Of a DNA stretch of 64,000 bases, positions 37,394-64,000 are shown piece by piece; position 1 is the first letter of the stretch; every line of letters begins with the position of its first letter. Source of the stretch: Octopus sinensis (Eukaryota); assembly GCF_006345805.1 (NCBI RefSeq), contig NC_043004.1, forward strand, positions 3,782,001 to 3,846,000, in the 5' to 3' direction. The position numbers and the translations under genes were made by a program. The notes below the pieces were generated by a model, which had not been told where the DNA came from, made no database searches, and was given only the letters and a program-made list of their open reading frames with translations.

Positions 37394-39994
37394 TTTTTGT
37401 TCTGTCAAGTGCATACTTGTTGCAAAGTGTCCAATGGACAAGCCTAGCTATACTGTCATGGCGTCTCTTATATTCCTTCTGGGCTAGTGGAGTGCATTGG
37501 CTGGTAACATGCCATACGGTTTCACCGTTTTTTCCACAGATTCTGCGCTTATCACTTTCTGATGTGTTGTCTGTTCTGTATTTTATGTAGTTTGTTCTTA
37601 ATGCCTGCTCTTAGGTAGCACAGATTAGAGCCTCTTTTTCCGGTTTTAGATCACTTTTAGTCATCCACAGCCATCTTTTTTCTCTGTCTTATCTTCAACA
37701 ACCCTATGAAATTGACCATGCATTCTTTTCTTTACCCACCTATTTTCAGTTTCATTCGTATTCAATTTCTTATATTGTGCTTTACCTTTGCAATCTTTTA
37801 TCCTACACAAGCCTGACCTTACTTCTAACAATAGCGGTTCTGTGGCATTTTTACATACTATGCTATGTTGTTTTCGTCTGCTCTAATGCTGTGTTCGCGT
37901 CCAATCAGTCGTCTACCCTCCTCTTTTTCTTGGTACATACAGTCTGCATGTGTCACTTTTTGGGTGGAGCGACCCATATCTAGTAAGCAACTTCCTTGTC
38001 TTTCTGTCTAAGCTGTTTAGTTCGTCTACTGTCCATGCGATTATCCCTGCTCCATATCTAAGGAGTGAAACTGCCCAGGTGTTGATAGCTTCGATCTTAT
38101 TCCGTCCATTTAATTTCGACTTAAGGATCAGTCTCAGTCTGCGTAAGTACTCCATCTTAAATTTTTCTGTCATTTCCTTCTCCATTAATTCATCCATTTC
38201 CAAAATCCCCAAGTACTTATAGCCCGTCTCTTCTATCTGCTTCCTACGACGGTATCGTTAGTCCGTCCATACATTTCATTTTGCCTCTTTTCAGTACTAA
38301 CACGCCACACTTTCTCAGTTCGAACTCCATTCTGATATCAGCACTGAACGTATACACCGTATCAACCAGGAAAATGACTTGGGCTTCACCTTCACCATAA
38401 AGTTTGAGGTCATCCATGAATAACAAATGATTGACTTTTTGCTGACGGCTTTTGAATACATACCCAGCTTTCGCTTTCCTCAGAATCAGTGTTAGTGGTA
38501 TCAAGCCCAGTACAAAGATCAGTGGGGACAGGCAGTCCTCTTGGAAGATGCCCCTCCTAATTTCTACTGTCCCTAAACTTCTTCCGTATGCTGTCAGGTC
38601 CGTCCTCCAATTCGCCATACTTTTTCCAAGCAATCGCTCAAAATTCGATGCAATCCCAAACAGGTTCATATACCCCATTATCCAAGAATGTGGGATCATA
38701 TCGTACACCTTACGATAGTCGATCCATGACATGGCTAAGTTACTTTTCCTCCTCCTGCAGTCTCTGAATACAGTTTTATCTATCAGGAGTTGATCCTTGG
38801 TACCTCCGCATTTACGCTTACAACCCTTCTGCTCATGTAGCAGGACTCCATATTTTCTAGATGTTCGTACATTGACTCTGCGAGTATTCCAGTCAATAAC
38901 TTCCACATAAGTGGCAAACAGGATATCGGCCTGTAATTGTCTACCATATTGCTTTTTTCGATGTTTTTCAGGCACAGCATTGTCCTACCCAATGTCAACC
39001 ACTCTGGTGTTACTTGGTCGGCATTTAACAAGGTGTTGAATTGTGCAGCTATTCGTGCATGACATTCACCAAATCTTTTGATCCAGTAATCTTGAACTCC
39101 ATCTGGTCCCAGGGCCTTCCAGATGCCCATTTTTTTTTTGCTGATTTTCTTCACTTCTCTAACTGAAATGACTAGTTCTGCCTGTTTTGGACCGACTACT
39201 GTTTGTTTCAGTTCTTGCAACCATTCAGCATCCTTCTTGTACTCCTTGTCTTTGCTCCAGATGTCACTCCAAAACCTTTGACTTTCAATGTTATCTGGTA
39301 TCAACTTTTCATCTGTACACCCGCCATTTATTTCTTTGTACAATCTCTTCTGATCTATTCTGAATAACCTATTCTGGTGCTAACCTTTCATTCTTTGGTC
39401 GTATCTTACCATCATTGCTTTGTTTGCAACGAGGCGCTGTTTCAGTTCCTCCACTACTACTTTCAGGCCCTTTCTTTCAATATTATACTTCCTTTTCAGC
39501 GCCCTGTATTTTTGTTCACTTTTAAGCTCACCTTTCTATTTTCGGTCTAACACAGAGATTTCCTTCGAGATTTTCTGCGACCATGAGATTGAGAATAGGA
39601 AGCCAGACATAGTCTTAATTGAGAAAGAAAACAAACTATGCTGGATCATAGATATAGCATGTCCAGCTGACAACAAGGTATGCGATAAGGAAGAAAGAAA
39701 AGTCGAGAGATATGACAGGTTAGCTTGGGAAGTTAAGCAGTTGTGGTCGATGAAAAAGGTCGCAGTAGTACCAATAATTGTCGGAGCCCTGGGAATAGTG
39801 AGCAAAAATCTCGAGAAGTACGTGGAATAAATAGGGGTTTCAATAAGAGTGGAGCACTTGTAGAAAACAGCACTGCTTGGAACCGCTCGAATACTCCGGA
39901 AGGTACTCGAAAAATAAGAGGTGTTACCTTAGTTCACTGGTAGTGAACAGCTGACACTGTAGTACATCTCCAGCATTAGAAACTGTACAAAGGC
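37392..39994. mobile_element. R4/Dong-like non-LTR retrotransposon with an inverted 5' body (minus, 37392-~39568) and a forward 3' end (plus, ~39568-39994)
   Basis: Minus strand: [43 protein letters not shown]-like thumb, CRIC..ETVWHVTSQC, RHD. Plus strand: RKPDIVL..IIDIACP..KVERY..LLGTARILRKVL, 3' UTR and (AAC/AAT)n. (TAA)n on both sides. Confidence 0.9.
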
Positions 39995-40021
39995 AATAAC
40001 AACAACAACAACAACAACAAC

Positions 40022-40064
<43 letters not shown>

Positions 40065-41337
40065 TAATAATAATAAGTACTGGGGGTCGATTCGTTCGAC
40101 TAAAATTCTTCAAGGTGGTGCCCCAGCATGGCCGCAGTCAAATGACTGACACTAGAAAAAATATAAAATGAAAGAAAAACGTACGTCTCATGAAGCCAAA
40201 GTAATTCAGTTCCAGGTGTTAGTTTGATGCAGGTAACTACTTAACCTACCTCCACCCTACGAAGAGCGAATACTTAACGCATCACCTCTTCATCTTAGTT
40301 ACCGACCCAACCTTTGGCATGTGACTTTAACCAAGTTTAGCTGTCTGTTCGTCGTGATTCCTTTTTACCTTCGTGGATGCCAGTTGAAATTATTTTTATA
40401 TTCCGATTTCTAGTTTTATTTTCTATGTTCTCATATTGATTTCTCCGTCCATGTGCAAGTTTGCGCATGTCTACAAATGCAGGTAGATTTTTCAATTTAA
40501 TAAATGACACTCATATCTAAAACCAAAGACATCCAAGTATGTAAATATGCACACGCACAAGTCGAAACGTTACAAGTGCAGTGACTGACCGTCTTTATAG
40601 GGGTGGCCAAATAAATATCAATTCTGGGTGGTGAACTAGTGAAACTGTGAGGGCCTCTGAGAGAATGTCTTGTGGCATTAGTTTTGGTTCGTTTATGTTC
40701 TCGATTTAAATTCTCCACCGACTAATTTGGGTGGTAGACTTAATCCGTCGCGGGGCTTAACACCAACACTTGATCTTTGGGTGCTAAGTATGTAAAGAGC
40801 CGGAACAAACACCGGCAAGCATTTTGTCCGCAGCCATAATGCAACTCCGAACCCTTTATTAACAAACAGATAACCGCCATAATAATTATATTTTCGTCAT
40901 CTCAGCAGGAGAGGAAGGAAGGATTTGAACCGAGAACAGAAAGTGCCGAAACGAATGTCACAATGTAAATTTTTCCCGACGCTTTAGCGAGACTGCATGG
41001 CTGGGGTCGATCGTTCGTTATCTTAATGCAATTTACTCGACTACAAACAGCAACAACAACAACAACAACAAATCGGTTGAAAAAAAAAACGTAATTGCAA
41101 AGGAAGTTGTGCTTATCGGAATTATCATAATCAATAGTTCATTATTTTCAGGGAGAAATAAATCAATAATAAAAAAATAATAATGATAATAAAGTAGTGA
41201 AATAACAAAATAATAATAAAATAATGAAATTGAAATTCTGATTATTTAATAAGAATTCTATACTTTAAATGGAAATATTTGCACTTAAGACTTTGGAATT
41301 AAAAAACGAACAGGAAAACATTAACAATTACAATTAA

Positions 41338-41381
<44 letters not shown>

Positions 41382-41399
41382 TGCATAAGTACGTACATA

Positions 41400-41520
41400 C
41401 ATACATACAAAAATATCCTGTTGTTGATGTTGAAATTCCAATGAAGGAGCCTTGGATCTAGGTTAGAAACCGGTTCTTTCTCTATTGGCAAGAAATCTTG
41501 ATATAAACTGAATATTGACA
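41400..41520. mobile_element. Short interspersed repeat fragment embedded in (TACA)n
   Basis: Non-repetitive 120-bp island between (TACA)n tracts that resembles a LINE 3' tail; family not assigned. Confidence 0.4.
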
Positions 41521-42176
41521 TACATACATACATAAATACATACATACATACATACATAAATACATACATACATACATACATACATACATAAATACATACA
41601 TACATACATACATACATACATACATACATACATACATACATACATACATACATACATTAAACATCCAGGAAAAAGAGAATATCTATAGCGAATTACTGCG
41701 CCACTTACAGCTCCTGCACCTTGACTATAAATTCTCATAGATGCATTAGGATATGTACCTTCAGATTTACACAAAACCCTAGAAATTCTAGATTTTTCGA
41801 AGAAAAATAAAACAAAAACAAAAAAGAACTGACGCAGATTTTCCAAATCCAACGTATTAGTGGCACAGTGAAGATTTGTGAGTCATTCCTAAAATTCTTC
41901 TTCTGAGATTCTTTAGATGAAGAGATGCATACACTTGGGTGTGTGTATCGACAGTTCAACCAACACACCAACTCAACCACACATTCACAAACACCGGGAT
42001 CTCAACTGAAAAAGTCTTGTCGTGTTGTTAGCGATCGGCTTGAATTCTCTCAAGAAGAACTTAAATAAAGCTCGAAGTAAAAACATACATTTATACACAT
42101 CTGTTTGGTCTCATTTATAGCTTTTAATATATAACGACAGAAACATTAAATTAAAGGCCCTCTAAATACTTTTCGT

Positions 42177-42690
42177 GGAGGCGCGTGGCTTACTGGTTAG
42201 AGTGTCAGCATCATGATCGTAAGATTGTGGTTTCGATTCCTGGACCGGGTGACGCATTGTGTTCTTGAGCAAAACACTTCATTTCACGTTGCTCCAGTCC
42301 ACTCAGTTGGCAAAAATGAGTAGCGCTGCGATGGACTGGCGTCCCGTCCAGTTAGGGAACACATACGCCATTGAAACCGGGAAACTGGGCCATGAGTCTG
42401 ACTAGGCTTTAAAAGGGCGCATTTATTTAGTAGAAGCGCGAGGCTTAGTGGTTAGGGTTTCAGCACCATGATCGTATGATTGTGGTTTCGATTCCTGGAC
42501 CAGGCGACGGATTGTGCTCTTGGACAAAACACTTCATTTCACATTGCTCCACTCCACTCAGTTGGCAAAAATGAGTAACGCTGCGATGGACTGGCTTCCC
42601 GTCCAGCTGGGGAACACATACGCCATAGAAACCGGGAAACCGGGCCCCTGAGCCTGGCTAGGCTTTAAAAGGGCGCATTTATTTTATTTC
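42177..42690 (+). mobile_element. Head-to-tail dimer of a tRNA-headed SINE with a V-SINE-like domain
   Basis: Two ~252-bp units (42177-42428, 42431-42690), each with ggtttcgattcc B box, gctgcgatggactggcgtcccgtccag and tail ctttaaaagggcgcatttattt. Confidence 0.85.
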
Positions 42691-42828
42691 AATACTTTTC
42701 AGTTGATATTTCTCAACGCCTTTGTTTTTACAGGTGAAAGGCTCACAACTATTTGAAAGTTTTGGTTATGTCTGAGAAGACCACAGAGCTGGAACTTCGT
42801 GGTTACTGTCAAACTTTTTCCTTGTCAC

Positions 42829-42892
<64 letters not shown>

Positions 42893-42895
<3 letters not shown>

Positions 42896-43440
42896 GCCCT
42901 GATGCAGTACCAGGCGTTGGCTCGCATGGCTTCTGATTGGAAGTGTTATCATGTACATTGTTTTGTCTTGGTATAAAAAATGGGCTACAGCAAATATTCT
43001 TCTCAATATCACAGATTTGCTTGTCAGTTGTTTGACCTTAACCAGTTGGCCATGTTCCTTAGTGGCTGACGATATGTGCATCTCTGATCACGAGCAGAAG
43101 TAGTGGGAGAGCATCACAGCCATGTGTTGAGAGGGATTCTTTGGGGTTTGAATAATTTACCTCTGGAAACATGGGTGTTTCATTCAACATCCTTAAACAA
43201 CCCTTATTCAGGGACCTTTTGAGCGGGATGGGTTACTCGACCAGAAGAAAATTCTATCTGGGCCCCACCTGCAAGGTCATGTGCTATTTATCTTCATATA
43301 AGCTCACCATGTCGAGCACATATGGTTGTGATGCATGTGCCTGGTGTACCCTTATCAGACGGGTAGTCGTGATGGGTATGCTGAGCCTTGTATATTTTAC
43401 CCCAGTGTCACTTTGATGGCATGTACTGCTCTCTCACTCA
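42893..43440 (+). mobile_element. Unclassified ~550-bp interspersed repeat flanked by (TAA)n
   Basis: Homologous to 22602-23043 and to the split remnant at 19225-19258/20561-20599; no ORF, no TIR. Confidence 0.8.
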
Positions 43441-43449
43441 ATAATAATA

Positions 43450-43484
<35 letters not shown>

Positions 43485-43529
43485 TAATAATAATAACAAC
43501 AACAACAACAACAACAATAATAATAATAC

Positions 43530-43727
43530 TTTCTATTACAGGCAGTATGCATGAAATTTTTGGGGAGGGATGTAGGTAGATTACATCGATCCCCATCGTG
43601 TAATTGGTACTTATTTCATTGGCCGCGAAAGGATGAAAGGCTAAGTCGACCTTGGTGGAATTTGAACTCAGAACGTATTTTACCGCCGCCGCCCGGTACA
43701 CTAACGATTCTGCCAGCTGGCCCCTTA
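43530..43727 (-). mobile_element. SINE family B
   Basis: aaaggatgaaaggctaagtcgacc...gaatttgaactcagaacg, reverse complement of the 3961-4175 type. Confidence 0.75.
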
Positions 43728-44552
43728 AACACGGCAATGATATTGGTAGTAATATAAAGAACACTTCCATTGAAACAAATGGAAATGCGATGCTTCCTCC
43801 GCATACATACACGAACACACACACACACACATACACACACGGACACATACACATACGCACACAAGCAGACGCAGACGTGCGCACACATACATGCACACAC
43901 ACATATACGTAGACGCAGACGCGCGTGCATTCACACGCATACACACACACATGCACACACATACACACACTCAGCCGCACATACACACACTCAGCCGCAC
44001 ATACACACACACACGCAGACTCATACGCACACGTACACGCACATACACACGCAGACACACACACACACATACACACGCAAACACAAACGCACACGCACAC
44101 ACACACACACACGCACAATTACGCATAAAACGAAAACGAGCTGATAGAGATAGCTGAGAGTGGCCGGTGACACATATTTGAACAGCAAAGATGAATATGG
44201 GTCTATCAAATAATATACAAAATACATTATTGAATTATTAGAAATGTCTTCGCTCCCGGGGAGCTAACTCAAGAATCATGAATCCTCCAAAATTGACTTG
44301 CCATTTAAGAAAAGGATTTTGATTATTTGAAGAGACGAAGACAGCTGTAGACACGTTTCTTCCTCAAAAAGCGTCATCAGCACAACAAATATATATTATT
44401 GTACTAACACTTTACACTTTAAAAAGCAAATACACTCTCTTCACTGAGTTAACAAAACATCATCTCTTTTTGTCTGTCTGTCTCTCCCTCCCTTTCTATG
44501 TGTGTCTGTATATTTAATGTATGGCATAGCATTATATAGATGAAAGTGTTGG

Positions 44553-44616
<64 letters not shown>

Positions 44617-45164
44617 ACATAAAAAAAGGACATACGTATATATGTGTACCTATGTTTACGTACATACACATATACACAGAAATGTTGATATAAAACAATT
44701 TAATTTCCTGCTCATCGCCTCCCCCCGCACCACCACCACCACCGCTCACTGGGTGACTAATTGACACTTAACAATCAACAGTATCGCTCACTGCTACCAA
44801 GCGAAGGACATCAAAGCTATTGATTTCAAAGGATGAGGAAATGAGAGTTATACAGTTGCCGTTTTCTTCAAGAGTATCAACAGAGAAATGGCTTCTGACT
44901 GTAATCGATTATTACGGCCATTGACATAGCTGTGTGGTTATGCTGTCCCTTTGTAATCTCGCTGTTCTGGCATCACTGCACGTCGCCACGCATTTCTATC
45001 TTCTAGAATAGGCTGCGATTGTTGCAGTAGTTACTTAGGAGTAAAATTTGGTTGATGGAAACTACGCAAAGCCCAGTTATATAGGCATCTCTGATGAGGC
45101 CCAAATAAGGAGCGAGAACCGAAATCTGTTCTTTTGTTTTTCACACACACACACACTCACACAA

Positions 45165-45197
<33 letters not shown>

Positions 45198-45290
45198 TGC
45201 ATACATGGTGGCTGTCCCCTCGTTATCGAGTATGGCCATTGCACAATGCTTAATCAATGTTATTATCGTGCAATGCCTGTGCAAGAACAT

Positions 45291-45322
<32 letters not shown>

Positions 45323-46262
45323 CATACATACATACATACATACATACATACATACATACATACATACATACATACATACATACATACATACATACATACA
45401 GGCACACGCACACATGGGCAAGCACAAGCTACGGGATTTCTGATAATTCAAGAATTCATTTTGTATGTTATTTGCTATACCCATATTCATTTTTGCAATT
45501 CAAATACGTGTCACCGGCCACTCTGTGCTATTTCTGTGAGTTCATTTTCTCATTTACTGAGAAATAATTAATTTTGCCATATGTGTATGTTTGCTACGTA
45601 GTTTTACATATACATTATATCTTGATACTGTCTGAGATTCCCGTTCACATCCCGCTGATATTAAACCGTTAAATACTACAGTATGTGAATTAGAAGCTTC
45701 AATTCTCTGGAGCTACGGTATTTGGTGTGTGTATGTCTAGTACAGAGGTTTGCATATGGATGGATGGATGGATGTGCGCAAATTAGCCGAGTCGTTAGAG
45801 TGTATGATGGAATGTCTTGTGGTATTTGTTCTGATTCGATTCTCTGCGCCTTGAGATCAAATCCCTCTAAGGTCAAATTTAATTTTCCTCCTTTCAGAGT
45901 TGATAAAGAAAGTACGAGTCCAGGACGATGGACCGGAAGACGAATTGTTCGAACATTGGACTGGATCTCCTTCTGTTTCCGTTCCTGTTTCTATACATTC
46001 TGCGATGAAATTCCGCCCCGTCACCATAAAACAATGTAAAGCATTTCTGTCAGGAGTTATAACCGACAGATTGTATTAGAACTTAGAAGTAAACAATGGA
46101 AACTTAGTCTTAGTCTGAAAAGATTTACCCCACCCCTTACACACACATATATACACATAGACAAATATATATTCATATATACATACACGGGTCTCAAACC
46201 ATTCCTTTGTTTTTGTTTTTTTTCTATAACTTATCATTGTTTCGACGTCTATTTATAATGTA

Positions 46263-46459
46263 TTAATTCATTACCAGTCTCTTAATTACGGGTGAAAAAT
46301 CGTTCTGTTTCACTGCTCGTTCGTAAGACTTTTCTAGGGGAAGAACTGTGTCGTCATCAATTTCACTGCGTATGGCCCGTTGATCTAATCCTCTTGAAAG
46401 GATTTTCATCAACTGTTCGTCACGGTTTGACACATCCATCGAACTTCTTTTACCATTTC
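46263..46459 (-). CDS. Coding exon (G)NGKRSSMDVSNRDEQLMKILSRGLDQRAIRSEIDDDTVLPLEKSYERAVKQNDFSPVIKRLVMN*; probable C-terminal exon of a GGNG/excitatory peptide (CCHamide-related) precursor
   Basis: Strong acceptor tttttcttctatttcag| followed by a phase-1 G|GA AAT GGT AAA AGA (G-N-G-K-R: amidation Gly plus dibasic site). Non-repetitive 197-nt open frame in TE-poor DNA, with an acidic spacer and a second KR. Confidence 0.6.
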
Positions 46460-49171
46460 CTGAAATAGAAGAAAAATATATATAGATGTATAAATAAATA
46501 CAGAAAAAGAACAATGCGGTCAAAATCTATGGAAACTGGCGCTAATGAAGAAAACCTTACATTATCAATTTGCCTGTAAGAAATAGCAACCAAATCCTCT
46601 AAAAATCACACCATATCTTCTTCAGAAAGATCAGGCATATTGGATAATGTTCTCTGAAATGCATTATAACTAAGAGATGGTCACGAATGGAACGCTGGTT
46701 GTCATCATTAACATATCCGATCAGAGATGGACTGGAGCTAAAACAATAATAACAAGATCAACAACATAATAGGCAAATGAAGCATGGACGCCCTTTGTGG
46801 TTACTTGATTTGCCTGAAATAACAGTCAAATCTTCCACTAACCAAACTCCAACGGTCTTTAAGTCCTTAAACGTTTTAAATAAATATACAAAGTAATCCT
46901 CGCTGGAAAAAGTCAATGATGTGATTTCACCGCGTGTTATCTCTCCGTGGACAGAAAAAGGAATCTATTTCACTAATCTCGCTGAAAGATCGTCCATTTT
47001 CCGTCTACTTTTTACAGCGTTACTAAAATGCATATGTATTAAAAAATTATATACCTTATGTTTCAAATAATCTAAAATAAATTCCACCGTTTCGTGCACT
47101 ATACTTAAGCCCTTCCTCCCGATATATATATATATATATACCGTCTTGCCCCTCTAACTGGTAATTAACATCATGATTTAAAGTCTTCTCCTACCCAACC
47201 TCTTTTTATAGACAGTTACTTATATCCAACTGACTACTCCTAATGTCTTATTTCCTCCCTAAGTAAAAGGGATACATATGATAATATTCATGACCGTACC
47301 TAGCCATGAGCTATCAACTCACTCTTGTCTTATATTCGAAATAGACACAGCCTTCTTGTTTTAGATTTAGTAGTTGATAAAGAGATAAATGAGTTAGAAA
47401 TGAATTACAATCCCTTACAATACTATGACCCCAATAGTCTTCATGTGATTCTTGGAAGTGTAGTCTATTCTTAGCTACAATAACGACAACATGAATTTCT
47501 TCCACATTCTTGCTCTGTTAAAATATTTGAGAAAAATTATATTAATGTGTCCTACATGTTAAAATTCTATTTATTTATTTGTGCAGCTGAAGATGGTATT
47601 GTATTTAAATTGATGTAATGATTGCATTAATCAATTAAATGGAGCCGCTTGAAACGGTCGTACTGCATCACTACTTGATATCCTGTTGCTTATTTTGATT
47701 ATATATATATATATATTTAATGTATAGAACGTAACGATACGAGCTAATAACAATCTCTTGCATAGTTGACGCGGGTTTAGACAGATTTTTCTAACATACC
47801 TTGTGCCTCTGCACGATCTTTGGGCTCTGAGCACATGGTATATTCAATTTACAAATCAGGAGACTGGTATAAAAGGAATCACGAGAAAAAAAAACGAGAA
47901 GAAGGTAGATGCAAATTGTGGAAGGGTGAATAAAAGCATCAAAAGAATGAAAATGTCCCTTTTGACCGCAAATCCACAATTAAGCTAGTTGTAGAATAAT
48001 TCCTCGGAAAGGGGTCCAAAGTCTGCAAGATGGCTGCTCAGTCCGGTGAGGGTGGTGTCTCCTAGTTTGCTAAAAGAAATTTGTCCATATGTTTGCATTT
48101 GCTGGAAATTTTGGATCTGGAATTCAGTAGTGATGTGGGATTCTTAGCTCTAAAAGGAATATATGACCTTTCAGCTTCGCCTAAGTTGCATTTCTTAGAT
48201 CCATGCCATGCGTGGCAATCCAGTTTCGTGGGTTAACTTTTGTCGATATGCCAATGAAGTTTGAAGAATAACTCCACATATATGTTCTTAGAAATTCTAG
48301 ACAACACATCAACGCGACACACATTAACGAATTCAAACAGACGTACATATATAAATACATTAGGTTATACAGTTTATTAGTTTCGTGAGCTTTGAAAATG
48401 ACAAAAAGTGAAACTATCTCCATTAATCGATGCGAAAGTATAAAAACCATGTTCTGCGGGTCAGACACGGTGTTAACTGAACAATTTCCTTGACATAATG
48501 AATGATTAACTTTATTTGCATATTTTTATTTCTGTTGGCGACTTCTTCAATAATTTTCTCTTTGATCACTTGTAATTTCAGAAATGATTGCGCACCTTAG
48601 TTGACTGTCTGCCACTCTACAAATAACGTTTGTCATATTAAAACCGATATAAATTTTGATTCTTACCTTAAAAAGGTGATACATTATTTTCATTATTTAT
48701 GCTATTTCTTTACAAACCTTTCCCACCCCCAAAGAAGAAGCCCGGTGGTTTCTTTACGAGAGCAGAAAAGTTGTTAGAAAGTTAGACTACACATCAATAA
48801 AATTTAAGACTAAAGTGCCGGGGCACGTAGACAAGAAATGAGATGAATTAATAATATACGCACAAACACTCATAAACAGACTCATAAAAACAGTCACACG
48901 CACGTATATGTGCACATATATAGTATGTATATGTGTGTGTGTATATATATAAATATATAAATATATGTATGCATATATATATGTATGTATATATGTTTGT
49001 ATATATGTATGTATGTATATATACATATATATCTGTTTGTATATATGTATGTATGTATATACATATATATATGTATATATATATATATATGTATGTATAT
49101 ATGTATGTATGTATATACATATATATATGTATATATATATGTATATATATATGTATGTATGTGTGTGTGTG

Positions 49172-49206
<35 letters not shown>

Positions 49207-49351
49207 CATCTATGAGTGTATGCAAACGTGTATATATTCATACAACAATAAACTGCTTCCGTCCGAACTTCTGTACGGCGCACACACAGATTTTCAAATT
49301 GCTGCTGTAAAGTGTAGAAGTGGGTCACTTACATCAACCAATCGAATCACA

Positions 49352-49474
<123 letters not shown>

Positions 49475-50609
49475 CGCACACATACATAAAACGTCGCACG
49501 ATTGTAGAAAGGGCTCGAACTAGACAGGCTAAATCTTATTGATTTCTTTCCGAGACTAAATGAGAATTAGACAGCAAGGTATAGATGATTGGGAACAAAC
49601 CATCCCAGTGTAACAATCAGTACACTATAATAGCAATCAAAAATAAAAATACTGTGAATGACTGGTATATTTTAAAGCTAAACAAAAGACACAGATCTGG
49701 GAAACAAATCTTGAATATAAAAAAGAAAAAACTATAAAAATTGGTGGGTTACTGAGAGTTAAAGGAAATCGCTTTCGTTATTTTATTATCAATTTCAGCT
49801 CGAAAGCTGCGGCCATTCTGGGGCTACACTTTCACTACTTGAAACCGCCTCTGATATGTGGCATTTGGTTGTGAGAGAGTCTGATGCTGTTACTGAAATG
49901 GAGGAAATGAGTTTTGTAACAAGCAAACAAGAACAGTGGCGAATTAAAATAAAGGGGTTTTGATAATACTAATAAAGTGTAAAGGAATCAAATGTGGGTT
50001 CTGGAAACTAAATTGTCCTTTGTATGTAAGAGGGACAGCTTTAAAGGGGAGGTAATTAACACAGTAAGTTACCCTGTGGCGAAGAATCAGTTTCCAAACA
50101 GTTTTTCGAAGTTCCAAAGGGGCAGATAAAAAATGGAATGGTTAAAAAAAGATAAAAACTAAAAATAAATGATCTATTTGGGAATTTCTGTGTCAGGGAA
50201 GCTGTTGTATTTCTATTCTTCTAAAAACCATTTGATGAATAGGCGACGCCGGGTGGGGTTGTGTATCGCTCGCTGTAATTATTAAAAGCAACCCGAATAC
50301 GGTTTAGACATGAATAGGCTAATCTTATTAAGACTGTAATTAATGATAATTAATGAATGTGCATGTGTGCGCGCGTGTATATATATATATATATACACCT
50401 TATTTCACAATATGCTACAGGTTGTAGTTCACAATATGCTACAGTATATAGAATGGCTCACTTCGAAGTTTACATCAAATATTTACACCGTTCTTCTAAT
50501 ATATTACGGGTTCCTGTGGTCCCTAAATCCATTTCATGCTATGCTGAACGTCCTCGAAGAACAACGTTTTTATTGTTTATACTTAAGGACGTACTAAACC
50601 ACTGGTATT

Positions 50610-55697: not shown

Positions 55698-56731
55698 TTG
55701 GAGAAATTTCGAAACTGGGTCTCGAATAATACTATTATTATTACTATATTATTACTATTATTATTATTTAAGTCATGCCTGGAAAAGAAGTCGGAATCTT
55801 GGGGTTAATAGACCACGCTCTTAACCACTACACCATATGTCCGTGGGCAATTATGGAGTGAATTTTGGGCTTATAAATCTAATATTTTCCTATCCTTCCT
55901 TAATACTGGTTTCCATATGCTATTCCACTCGGTCTGCTTAGGAGGTTGTTGTGTCCTAACATATGTGCTGCTTCTTTTAGTTTTCCAGTGGTGTTCTCCA
56001 TTATTTTAACTTCATCCCACAGGGGACATAGAACTATATAATCTTAATGTAATTGATTCGTAGAACACATCTAGACCGATTATTATCAGTTAAGGGCTAC
56101 GTAGGAATCAAAGGTTTTTATTTATTTATTGGGTTTCAGATTTCCAAAGGAGAGTTCTTCATAAAAGAAGCAAAGTGTTTTCTAACGTCTAATGTTGATA
56201 TTCATAGAAAGTTAAAGGGTTTCTATCGTTTAGCCACAGGTCAGCCACCATCGAGCTGTCTTAACATGAAATCTATTCCAGGTATGGGAATCTTGTTTTT
56301 TCTTTTTATACTCACGGTACGCATAACAACACTATCCGCTGTATACTTCTATTTTTGAAGAAGGTAGGATGTGGATTGAGGGAAATTCGGCGGCTATTTC
56401 TAATAGGCTAGATAACCACGTACAGATAATTCTTCATTATTATATACAATAGCCTTAAACACGCTTATCATTCTAATATACCAAGATGTATGCCGCGTAT
56501 TTAAAATCAAATATTTCTATAGAGCTTTGAATTACTGCAACCTCTTCCTCCTCTCCAAAAAAGAAAAAAAAAAGAATCGTTTCTTATTGAGATCTAAATT
56601 CCCCAAAGCAGAAATATGGAATATTTTGGCGAAAAGGAAGTTTCAAGAACTACTCAATAGATTTCTAAGCTGAATGAATGGGAAACAATCTATAACACAC
56701 ATACACATGCATGTGCATGTGCATATATAAG

Positions 56732-56802
<71 letters not shown>

Positions 56803-56873
56803 TATATATATGTATATATATATAATATATATAAGTACATGTAAGTGTATGCATGTATCTACACACACACCAC

Positions 56874-56948
<75 letters not shown>

Positions 56949-57599
56949 ATACATATACACACATCTTTATATGTACGCGTGTGTATATAGATATAAACAC
57001 ATATACATATGAGAGTTTGTGTGTGTGTGTACAATTATTCTGTGTGTGTCTCTACTTCAAAAATGTTTTATATCCAGAGTTTGTTAACAATCCAGCTGTA
57101 CTTCCAACTACAGTGGCGTAGTGGCGTCGCTATTTTGACCGCTTCTGTACGGGGAACCCAATCGACCGACAAATGACTTAAACACAACATTCCTTCCACT
57201 ACAGAATATAAAGATATAAAGCGGCGGCCATGTTGCGGTCTGACAACCTGTACATTATATGCTACGCCAGTGGTGACTCAACATCCATCTTTTGTCATTC
57301 GTCTGCTCTAAATATAGAATCGCACGTACATACGTCGAAGCATGCATACACACATGCTCAAATATCGATCTTTCAAAACGATAACTGAGAATGTGTGTGT
57401 GTGTGCTTCTGCATGTATTTACATGGATTCATACACAAGAGTATGTATGTATATATTTTGCGTGTCTTCTTAAGGCAATATGTATGTGGTTGCTAAGGGG
57501 GACCTGCATTTTCTCTCTCAATATCTAGCCTTGCTTTTGCACGAAATTTAAAATTTAACCATACAGAAATATATACATACACTGCATTTATGCATATAT

Positions 57600-58225
57600 A
57601 CAAAACTATATACAAACGATACTATTGTTTGATCGCAGTTGAATACATCCATCCATCCATACATATATACATACATACATACATGCATACATACATACAT
57701 ACATACATACATACATACATACATACATACATACATGCATACATAAATAAATAAATACATACATACATACATACATAAATAAATACATCCATCCATCCAT
57801 CCATCCATCCATCCATACATACATACATAAATAAATACATACATACATACCTAAATAAATACATACATACATGCATGCATGCATACATACATATATATAT
57901 ATATATATAATATATATATATATACACACGTATATATAATAAATATAGATGTTTATGGGTGCATGTATATATGTAAGTACTTTTGTGTGTGTGTGTGTGT
58001 GGTGTGTGTGTGTATATATATATATATATATGCACACACACATGCACACACATACACGCACACACATATATGTACATACACGCATCTCCCTGTCTCTGTA
58101 CACTCACACACACAAATGACTGCATACATACTCTGATGGGCGCACACATGCATATATACACAACATACGTATCTACATTCGGCTTGTGTGCGCATGCGTA
58201 TGTGTGTGTGTGTGTGTGTGTGTGC
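57600..58225. repeat. Compound microsatellite block (TACA, TCCA, TA, TG)
   Basis: Directly visible. Similar blocks at 11060-12410, 34430-35280, 48900-49470 and 61200-61830. Confidence 0.95.
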
Positions 58226-58540
58226 GTTTAAATTTTTTGCGTCTGTTCTTGAGACAATACATCTATTTGTCTGTTTGCTTAGGTAGGTTCTCTGGATTTC
58301 TCTCTTTCGCTTCTTTGCATCTGGAGAGTCAGAATATCGTCGATGTTCGAAAATCTTAATTATAATCGTTTGCCTGATTAATCTTTTGAGAATATCCTGC
58401 GTCGCCTGGGCAGGTGATTTTCAGAAAGCAGACATTCAGAGATTGGAGGGAAACAACGAAAAAAAAAAAAGTCACAGTAACAAAAGAGTTCAAATGTATG
58501 CGCATGGTTTTGTGTTTGTGTGTGTGGTGTGTGTGTGGTG

Positions 58541-58571
<31 letters not shown>

Positions 58572-58681
58572 TGTGTGTGTGTGTAGTGAAAGAGGCGGTA
58601 TTAATACCAAAAGGTAATATTTATCTTCCACTTAAAGTGTTATAACACAACTTCCACTTGAGTGGAAAATAAATATTACCT

Positions 58682-58748
<67 letters not shown>

Positions 58749-58833
58749 GTGTGTATGTGCATAAATATGCATTTATACATATATATATATTATATATATA
58801 TATGTATAAATGCATATTTATGCACATACACAC

Positions 58834-58879
<46 letters not shown>

Positions 58880-58907
58880 TTTTATATATGTATATAAAAG
58901 TTTGTGC

Positions 58908-58941
<34 letters not shown>

Positions 58942-59938
58942 GCACAAACTATATATATATATATATATATTTGTATGTGCACGTATGTTTGTGTGTGTAT
59001 GTCTGTGTGTGTGTGGTTGTGTGTGTGTGTTTGTGCGTGTGCGCGCGTCCTGGGTTTGATAAACCGTTCAACAACCCACAAACACTGTTGACTTCACTTA
59101 AACATTATTTGCCGTACGATGTCAAAATTTTCGTCGCTCGAAACTGCGAACTGGTCACAGGTAAGATTACACCGTATATCACAGGTATATAGACTGAAAC
59201 TTTTCGGGGAAAGAGAAAACTTGCTTAAATCGATACTGAACTGTTAACTCATATTTTGTTTTAACGACCCCATGATGACAGCGTTCGACCTCGGTCGGAT
59301 TTGAAACAAGAATGTAGAGTGACACAACCAAAAGCCAATAATAATATTTGACAGCAGCGCAAAACACCACATTTTGTAAGATAGAAATAAACTATTGCTT
59401 GTATTACACTCCATTTTCTGCATAGATATGGAATCAAAAAGTACAAACCATGCACACCTACATTAAAGATCTTTTGACAATCCGTTATGTAATTATGCAG
59501 ATGGCAACATCACTGCATCAGTGATTAATAAAACAACAGACCGACGAATTTATTCTTCGTTAAATGCTCTTCACTTCTAATTCGAGTACGCAACAAACAT
59601 TTTTGTTTTCACAGTTATTCTTGGTATAATAATTAATTACGCATTTCGTACAGATCTTTTAGAATCATTCAATTGTGTGCTTAGAGGTTTTGCTGACGTT
59701 TTTAACTTTTTATATTCTTGGATAATCTCCTTGATTATTTCTAGCATCTTGGATTCCACGAAAGAAAACTCATCCAATAAGTCATCCATTTATTCTATAC
59801 AAAGATGGTGGGAAAAAGCACTCTTCAAATGTCTATTATTTCGCGAACTACGACTTAAGGAGAATGGTTATTTCATTTATTACAGTAAAACAATGACTTG
59901 CTTTTGGCATGAAGACTGTAAAAGCAAACAAGATCTCT

Positions 59939-63700: not shown

Positions 63701-64000
63701 GAATACGGCAGAAAGACAGCATCTATGGACCATCGATAATAAGTGAACAAGTCAAGTGCCCAAGATAAACTCTCAGCTTCAGACATAATTATTTAAGATA
63801 CGACCAACCCGCCTGGATTAGGGTAGGGTTAAACTTAGAGATTCTTGAGCAAGGAATACAACTTGTTAATTACTATGCTGCAAATGGCCAAGATATCGGG
63901 GACAATAAGAATCTGTTAGGAATTCTTAAGATTTAAAGAACGATGAACAAAACAAGATGCTTTCATTCACAACCTCGATATCAAGAAGGAGGCCAGTCAA

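Follow-up and report, generated by a model that had tools for sequence, protein, structure and literature searches.

The stretch of Octopus sinensis DNA analysed here (contig NC_043004.1, positions 3,782,001 to 3,846,000; 64,000 nt, hereafter the window) carries at 46459-46275 on the minus strand an exon that is very probably exon 3 of the four-exon gene LOC115214755, the octopod ortholog of the lophotrochozoan excitatory peptide (EP)/GGNG/GGNamide precursor and the counterpart of arthropod CCHamide. The window from 34495 to 64000 (29.5 kb) was found to be 100% identical to the O. sinensis locus of XP_029639638.1 (chromosome CM016866.1, GCA_006345805.1), and exons 3 and 4, both located in the window, translate exactly to this 107-aa protein of LOC115214755. 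A protein search using the exon translation retrieved a 107-aa "hypothetical predicted protein" of O. vulgaris (CAI9727000.1), whose 90% cluster also contains XP_029639638.1 and the O. bimaculoides protein XP_014768932.1 (LOC106868263). The exon translation matched the O. sinensis protein exactly and the O. vulgaris protein with 97% identity, while the O. bimaculoides ortholog is 96% identical over its full length and the Argonauta hians protein GAB1603730.1 shows 50% protein identity to Octopus. Independent annotation of the O. sinensis, O. bimaculoides, O. vulgaris, and Argonauta hians genomes arrived at the same four-exon product, and in all four the database labels read only "uncharacterized" or "hypothetical".

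Gene structure at the locus

The elements of the gene are listed below; a slash within a sequence marks an exon boundary.

About 52.9 kb past base 64000: exon 1, 64 nt coding, signal peptide MSLRLSLFLLSAVILLSIANA and first base of Ala22
About 21.2 kb past base 64000: exon 2, a 39-nt micro-exon, bases 2-3 of Ala22, KCSRHNLHACLG, and first base of Gly35
46460-46480, minus strand: 3′ splice site of intron 2, polypyrimidine tract and AG, tatatttttcttctatttcag, up to 46460
46275-46459, minus strand: exon 3 of LOC115214755, the probable EP/GGNamide precursor gene, 185 nt, phase 1 in and phase 0 out, bases 2-3 of Gly35, NGKR, and the linker
46446-46457, minus strand: AAT GGT AAA AGA, encoding Asn36-Gly37-Lys38-Arg39, from sequence and alignment
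46278-46283, minus strand: second dibasic pair, AAG AGA, the KR in VIKRL (Argonauta counterpart YKRL)
46263-46274, minus strand: 5′ splice site of intron 3, gtaatg, with the read-through codons VMN-stop; donor CTG/gtaatg at 46275/46274
36531-46274, minus strand: intron 3, 9.7 kb, phase 0
36495-36530, minus strand: coding part of exon 4, 36 nt, AKIILSEESQN-stop, acceptor tttctttcag
36402-36415, minus strand: two AATAAA polyadenylation signals, which begin 80 and 88 nt past the exon-4 stop

Read on the minus strand from 46480 to 46263, the sequence is tatatttttcttctatttcag, GA AAT GGT AAA AGA AGT TCG ... AAG AGA CTG gta atg aat taa. An initial annotation, made from the window sequence, had described a strong acceptor followed by a phase-1 G/GA that gives (G)NGKR, and both were confirmed: the polypyrimidine tract and AG lie on the minus strand, and exon 3 opens at 46459 with GA, the remainder of the phase-1 Gly codon, at the coordinates claimed. 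The frame in which GA closes the split Gly codon translates as (G)NGKRSSMDVSNRDEQLMKILSRGLDQRAIRSEIDDDTVLPLEKSYERAVKQNDFSPVIKRLVMN up to a stop, and the two remaining frames across exon 3 are stop-ridden. The exon comprises bases 2-3 of Gly35, NGKR, and then the linker SSMDVSNRDEQLMKILSRGLDQRAIRSEIDDDTVLPLEKSYERAVKQNDFSPVIKRL. From sequence and alignment, Asn36 is the predicted amidated C-terminal residue, Gly37 the predicted amide donor, and Lys38-Arg39 the putative prohormone-convertase site. The acidic spacer and second KR of the initial annotation were likewise found, the spacer of 54 residues being only mildly acidic (11 acidic and 8 basic residues, pI 4.65), and the KR in VIKRL is a possible secondary cleavage site, which would perhaps free a further C-terminal peptide.

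Upstream of exon 3, the gene models join MSLRLSLFLLSAVILLSIANA/AKCSRHNLHACLG, i.e., the exon is linked to both a signal peptide and a Cys pair, as the initial annotation had expected. The coding lengths of the four exons total 324 nt, equal to 107 codons plus the stop, with introns 1 and 2 in phase 1 and intron 3 in phase 0. The exon had been counted as exon 2; it is exon 3 of 4, with the signal peptide and the peptide core encoded on two separate exons. The upstream coding sequence does lie beyond base 64000, where a first exon had been predicted, but on two exons, ~53 kb and ~21 kb out, rather than one, and the intron proposed to exceed 17 kb is intron 2, with a length of ~38.8 kb. The N-terminal part of XP_029639638.1 reads MSLRLSLFLLSAVILLSIANA/AKCSRHNLHACLGGNGKR..., so that the precursor is laid out as signal peptide, AKCSRHNLHACLGGN-G-KR, and spacer, with one peptide copy immediately following the signal peptide. 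The N-terminus has the typical shape of a signal peptide, with Arg4, a 14-residue hydrophobic core, and A-N-A at -3 to -1.

Downstream, the exon had been regarded as the C-terminal one, closed by a stop after the second KR. A TAA is indeed in frame at 46265-46263; in the gene models, however, it lies in intron 3, past the donor CTG/gtaatg, and AKIILSEESQN with the stop codon comes from a fourth exon, 36530-36495. Because CTG/gtaatg is a splice donor, the VMN-stop codons are intron read-through and not coding. The codons of exon 4 (GCG AAA ATC ATT TTG TCT GAA GAA TCG CAG AAC TGA) give a translation that matches residues 97-107 of the Octopus proteins at 100%. A two-exon gene that closes with the exon at 46459-46275, its translation stopping at the TAA at 46263 to give ...VIKRLVMN, is very unlikely, even though the frame continues across the donor for three codons up to a stop, and an intron-retaining or alternatively polyadenylated isoform could exist. 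Not only is CTG/gtaatg a good donor, but the matching position in Argonauta carries the conserved donor AAG AGA TTG/gtaata, beyond which the read-through is long and unrelated to VMN-stop. All four octopod gene models splice on to the fourth exon, and both the KRL/A junction and the tail are kept between Octopus and Argonauta (AKIILSEESQN vs. ARETLNEDLQYY). The phase-0 intron after Leu in the C-terminal segment is likewise found in limpet, chiton, and scallop. The two AATAAA signals behind the exon-4 stop are consistent with a terminal exon 4, albeit as weak evidence by themselves in AT-rich DNA, whereas neither AATAAA nor ATTAAA occurs in the 300 nt downstream of the read-through stop. That the upstream coding sequence occupies two exons rather than one also argues against a two-exon gene.

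At the 5′ end of the O. vulgaris gene, the exon-1 read-through ...ANAGKCS was considered as a second peptide and rejected, being merely the gtaagtgc donor in frame with a stop after 7 codons. Upstream of exon 1 in this species (L001 9800-10000), a TATA-like box, tctataaatatt, was observed ~55 nt ahead of the ATG and immediately 3′ of a long (GT)n tract, and a very long (TA)n tract is present in the intron after exon 1.

Family assignment and comparison with known precursors

The coding exon had initially been ascribed to a GGNG/excitatory-peptide (CCHamide-family) gene, and profile searches, hhalign, and intron positions agree on this assignment. A mixed profile was built from the octopus protein and the published GGNamide peptides of Aplysia (PMC12969411), scallop (PMC5996578), and oyster (PMC4200219). 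Searched against 5.8 billion sequences, it retrieved 29 further proteins with E values from 3e-5 upward, every one of them molluscan or annelid and laid out as a signal peptide followed by KCxGxW..H.CxGGNGKRS. Among them are proteins named by their depositors as Charonia GGNG-2, Deroceras ggng 2, and the Hirudo LEP precursor, as well as a Patella protein with a weak match to Pfam CCHa1_2 in a precomputed table. When a profile of octopod sequences only was used, the next matches after the octopods were all GGNG precursors, at weak E values of 0.5-10. Using hhalign, the four octopod sequences were aligned with 20 canonical precursors at a probability of 98.2% and an E value of 5.7e-14 over 37 columns, which extend from the Ala/Gly before K-C, through GGNGKRS, to the linker motif LMKILSRG / LLRxiLL (L..IL). 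In a 13-sequence alignment, M1, C24, H30, C32, G34, G35, N36, G37, K38, R39, and S40 are invariant, and K23 and L51 nearly so. A HMMER search of 1.84 billion representatives found Argonauta as the sole relative.

The one other match of that search, the unrelated, repetitive, GKR-rich protein P0032, aligned only via its GKR-flanked repeats and was discarded. This protein of 795 aa consists of ~30 tandem ...NLQTIAQEIQALIDGVTTAIGSGKR... units parted by GKR, and resembles a multi-copy amidated-peptide precursor.

The intron positions, whose place and phase were used as a membership criterion of our own, were compared among Octopus, Argonauta, the limpet Patella caerulea, the chiton Liolophura sinensis, and the scallop Argopecten irradians. 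In all five, phase-1 introns interrupt the gene immediately ahead of the K-C codons and within the second Gly of GGN, and an intron in phase 0 follows a Leu of the C-terminal segment. In every species examined, the exon after the GGN intron begins G/Gx AAY GGN AAR MGN. The earlier proposal that the final Gly codon of the mature peptide is interrupted by an intron was thus borne out, and this position is common to four molluscan classes. The peptide-core micro-exon between the two phase-1 introns measures 42 nt in limpet, chiton, and scallop but 39 nt in Octopus and Argonauta, indicating that octopods lost exactly one ring codon. The phase-1 intron inside the GGN motif can serve as an orthology marker for annotating the EP gene in other molluscs.

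The features common to the family are a single peptide after the signal peptide, two Cys, and Gly-Gly or Gly-Ala before the amidated residue, which is Asn in all spiralians; an aromatic residue, and often a His as well, between the cysteines is described as a "common feature" and not as a strict requirement (PMC6617912). The octopus precursor has all of these features but one, the aromatic ring residue. C24 and C32 are invariant in the alignments, with the disulfide itself predicted, and the C-terminal sequence L-G-G-N-G-K-R-S provides Gly-Gly, Asn, the amide-donor Gly, and the dibasic site. Published members include Aplysia apEP/CCHa, KCHGRWAIHACFGGN-NH2, validated by mass spectrometry (PMC12969411), scallop GKCRGRWSIHACLGGNamide (PMC5996578), and oyster SKCKGPWANHMCFGGNamide (PMC4200219).

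Like the molluscan and annelid EP/GGNG precursors (Thais TEP-1/2, Aplysia, scallop, oyster, Charonia, Deroceras, and Hirudo), the octopus precursor holds one peptide copy after the signal peptide. It also shares with them the K-C start and the H-x-C-x-G-G-N-G-K-R-S end of the peptide, the L..(I/L)L linker motif, an L/K/R-rich C-terminal segment, and four exons with intron phases 1, 1, and 0 at the same places. It differs in that the octopod ring has (R/K)-(H/K)-N-(L/M) in place of the core Gly-x-Trp-(A/S)-(I/N), in carrying a dibasic KR within the C-terminal segment, and in its length of 107 aa, listed as shorter, compared with 103-178 aa in the EP/GGNG precursors. The arthropod CCHamide-1/-2 precursors (Pfam CCHa1_2, PF27941) resemble it in their small size and in the cyclic amidated peptide at or near the N-terminus, in which a His stands two positions ahead of the second Cys and Gly-(Gly/Ala) precedes the amidated residue; the latter is His in the arthropod peptides and Asn in the octopus, as in spiralians. 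Their receptors are the basis on which EP and CCHamide are considered orthologous (PMC6617912, PMC12969411); the searches gave no direct match, by sequence or by profile, between the octopus protein and an arthropod one.

Elevenin (L11) is considered a distant relative of CCHamide and GGNG (PMC5627052), and scallop elevenin, RPKIGRRFCAHYPFAPRCLGVAA (PMC5996578), like the octopus peptide, is the one disulfide-ring peptide that follows the signal peptide in a small protostome precursor. Membership of the octopus peptide in that family was rejected, as elevenins are unamidated and without GGN-G-KR, whereas the octopus peptide has GGN-G-KR and its profile matches are all GGNG.

Within cephalopods, a GGNG/GGNamide of Sepia officinalis (Zatylny-Gaudin et al. 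2016) is listed in Table 1 of PMC6617912, and as the only cephalopod member reported in the literature searched it is presumably the decapodiform ortholog. The octopod-only profile search yielded no squid, cuttlefish, or Nautilus ortholog, and the mixed-profile and HMMER searches retrieved no decapodiform protein either. Neither the mixed nor the octopod-only profile search found a canonical, Trp-containing EP protein in three annotated Octopus proteomes, and LOC115214755 is therefore most simply the sole ortholog and not a paralog, although a second EP gene with a missed micro-exon may exist.

The divergent octopod ring and its predicted peptide

Several observations weigh against the proposed reading of LOC115214755 as an EP/GGNamide precursor gene. 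The initial annotation had expected the motif KCxGxWAxHAC; it is absent, octopods being without one codon and without Gly-x-Trp, and the octopod ring instead follows KC[STN][RK][HK]N[LM]H[AV]C. Seven residues separate the cysteines in octopods, compared with 8 in the other lophotrochozoans retrieved, a spacing of 8 also being reported for Aplysia and "other lophotrochozoans" (PMC12969411). The Gly and Trp missing from the octopod ring do not vary among the 20 canonical sequences aligned, and the C-x-G-x-W..H.C ring is found in 31 of the 31 non-octopod precursors retrieved. The ring is free of Trp, Phe, and Tyr in all four octopod sequences, and since it lacks this common aromatic residue, activity at the canonical receptor is not assured. 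Furthermore, a Pfam-A scan with CCHa1_2 (PF27941) missed the octopus protein, as it missed the canonical Patella, Deroceras-like, and Charonia precursors alike; the octopod gene models are computational predictions under "uncharacterized" or "hypothetical" labels; and the signal-peptide cleavage site is placed by rule alone. The His before the second Cys is retained in octopods (H30).

The earlier remark that the window holds no W-A-x-H-A-C exon was confirmed by a six-frame regular-expression search (W[AS]xH[AST]C, CxGxW, and similar patterns), which came back empty because the peptide exon lies outside the window and has no Trp. Canonical GGNG peptides, used as motifs or as BLAST queries, would likewise miss the gene, owing to the codon deletion, the loss of Trp, the 39-nt micro-exon, and the 30-40-kb introns. 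In the literature searched, no occurrence of the octopus peptide strings, LOC identifiers, or accessions was found. The family is well known, and the octopus gene is a new, divergent member of it.

A maturation route can be proposed from established prohormone processing and from the mass spectrometry-validated Aplysia peptide (PMC12969411). Signal peptidase would cut after Ala21 (A-N-A) and a prohormone convertase after Lys38-Arg39, the KR would be trimmed by a carboxypeptidase, peptidylglycine alpha-amidating monooxygenase would turn Gly37 into the C-terminal amide, and a disulfide would form between Cys24 and Cys32. Processing in this way would yield AKCSRHNLHACLGGN-NH2 (calculated monoisotopic mass 1576.746 Da); the products of O. 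bimaculoides and Argonauta would be AKCNRHNMHACLGGN-NH2 and VKCTKKNLHVCLGGN-NH2, respectively. Exon 4 completes a C-terminal segment, which aligns with the L/K/R-rich C-terminal segment of other precursors.

The receptor would be an octopus EP/CCHamide-type G protein-coupled receptor (GPCR) of the gastrin-releasing-peptide-receptor-like kind, a type related to the GRP, NMB, and endothelin receptors. In a supplementary tree of PMC6617912, O. bimaculoides XP_014782347.1 ("gastrin-releasing peptide receptor-like") is placed among the molluscan EP/CCHamide receptors. This protein is a likely candidate receptor for the octopod peptide, and the predicted AKCSRHNLHACLGGN-NH2 is in turn a candidate ligand for the orphan octopus gastrin-releasing-peptide-receptor-like GPCR. 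The peptide would probably act as a brain-gut or myoactive peptide. The EP/CCHamide system is a satiation signal in Aplysia and a regulator of feeding in insects, and these roles make the octopus peptide a plausible entry point to feeding control in the octopus. LOC115214755, LOC106868263, CAI9727000.1, and GAB1603730.1 can be named as EP/GGNamide (CCHamide-type) precursors.

That the octopod EP ligand, having left the canonical pharmacophore with the loss of Gly-x-Trp and a ring smaller by one residue, co-evolved with a changed receptor pocket, switched receptor, or took on a new role such as a secreted or salivary one is unlikely; if true, it would constitute a datable event of ligand-receptor remodelling in the cephalopod lineage. 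It is very unlikely that LOC115214755, though descended from the EP gene, has changed function and ceased to encode a conventional EP neuropeptide, its product acting at a new receptor or having been recruited into saliva or venom as a secreted mimic of prey peptides. Such a change would fit the loss of the Gly and Trp kept in every non-octopod precursor retrieved, the ring smaller by one residue, the ring residues that differ among octopods (SRHNL, NRHNM, and TKKNL), and the recruitment of GGNamide genes into cone snail venom (PMC13542836). Against it, no other EP-like protein was found in the three annotated Octopus proteomes, and octopus keeps an EP-type receptor. The gene has the four-exon structure of the endogenous gene in other molluscs, with no duplication seen. 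In addition, a 2026 screen of cephalopod salivary-gland toxins, which used 33 molluscan neuropeptide models including GGNG, reported mimics of stanniocalcin, luqin, myosuppressin, tachykinin, and neurotensin, but no GGNG mimics.

The pattern of constraint also favours an endogenous EP/GGNamide precursor. Exon 3 and its O. vulgaris counterpart are identical at 184 of 185 bases (99.5%), while the 1-kb flanks are ~93% identical. Compared with Argonauta hians, exon 3 has a nonsynonymous divergence (dN) of 0.27 and a synonymous divergence (dS) of 1.08; the resulting dN/dS of 0.25 indicates that the linker too, and not the peptide alone, is under purifying selection, and is typical of a conserved prohormone. 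The probability that exon 3 arose as an open frame by chance, or is a pseudo-exon annotated in error within repeat-rich non-coding DNA, is negligible, for although microsatellites and transposon remnants abound around it and the gene products bear the labels "hypothetical" or "uncharacterized", the Argonauta protein is 50% identical with identical splice positions, dN/dS is 0.25 in an exon better conserved than its flanks, the profile match to the 20 canonical precursors reaches an E value of 5.7e-14, and the intron phases are common to four molluscan classes.

Other elements of the window

The long open reading frames (ORFs) of the window are mostly translations of microsatellites, together with transposon remnants, and a tRNA scan of the window found none. 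CA, TA, and CATA microsatellites are dense, for example at 45192-45440, 48787-49489, and 56711-59192, and at 46135-46200, ~70 nt downstream of the exon-3 donor region. The transposon-derived elements are as follows.

38244-38975, minus strand: retroelement fragment in intron 3, on the gene strand, reverse transcriptase (RVT_1) with an E value of 5e-12; adjoining ORF at 38783-39343, minus strand
32476-33294, plus strand: mariner/Mos1-type transposase remnant downstream of the gene, HTH_48 and the DDE part of Transposase_1 (E value 2e-23)
29331-29846, minus strand: second mariner/Mos1-type remnant downstream of the gene, N-terminus of HTH_48 only

A run of 100 N at 18899-18998 represents an assembly gap, with highly repetitive sequence on both sides. 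Arrays with an 8-nt period, at 19408-19973 and from 21417 onward, translate as MYVCMYVC... and give rise to spurious ORFs of ~190 aa. These arrays lie within a direct duplication of ~2 kb by the gap, in which 20134-20433 and 22092-22391 share 94% identity at a spacing of 1958 nt; the duplication may be a real tandem one or an assembly artefact.

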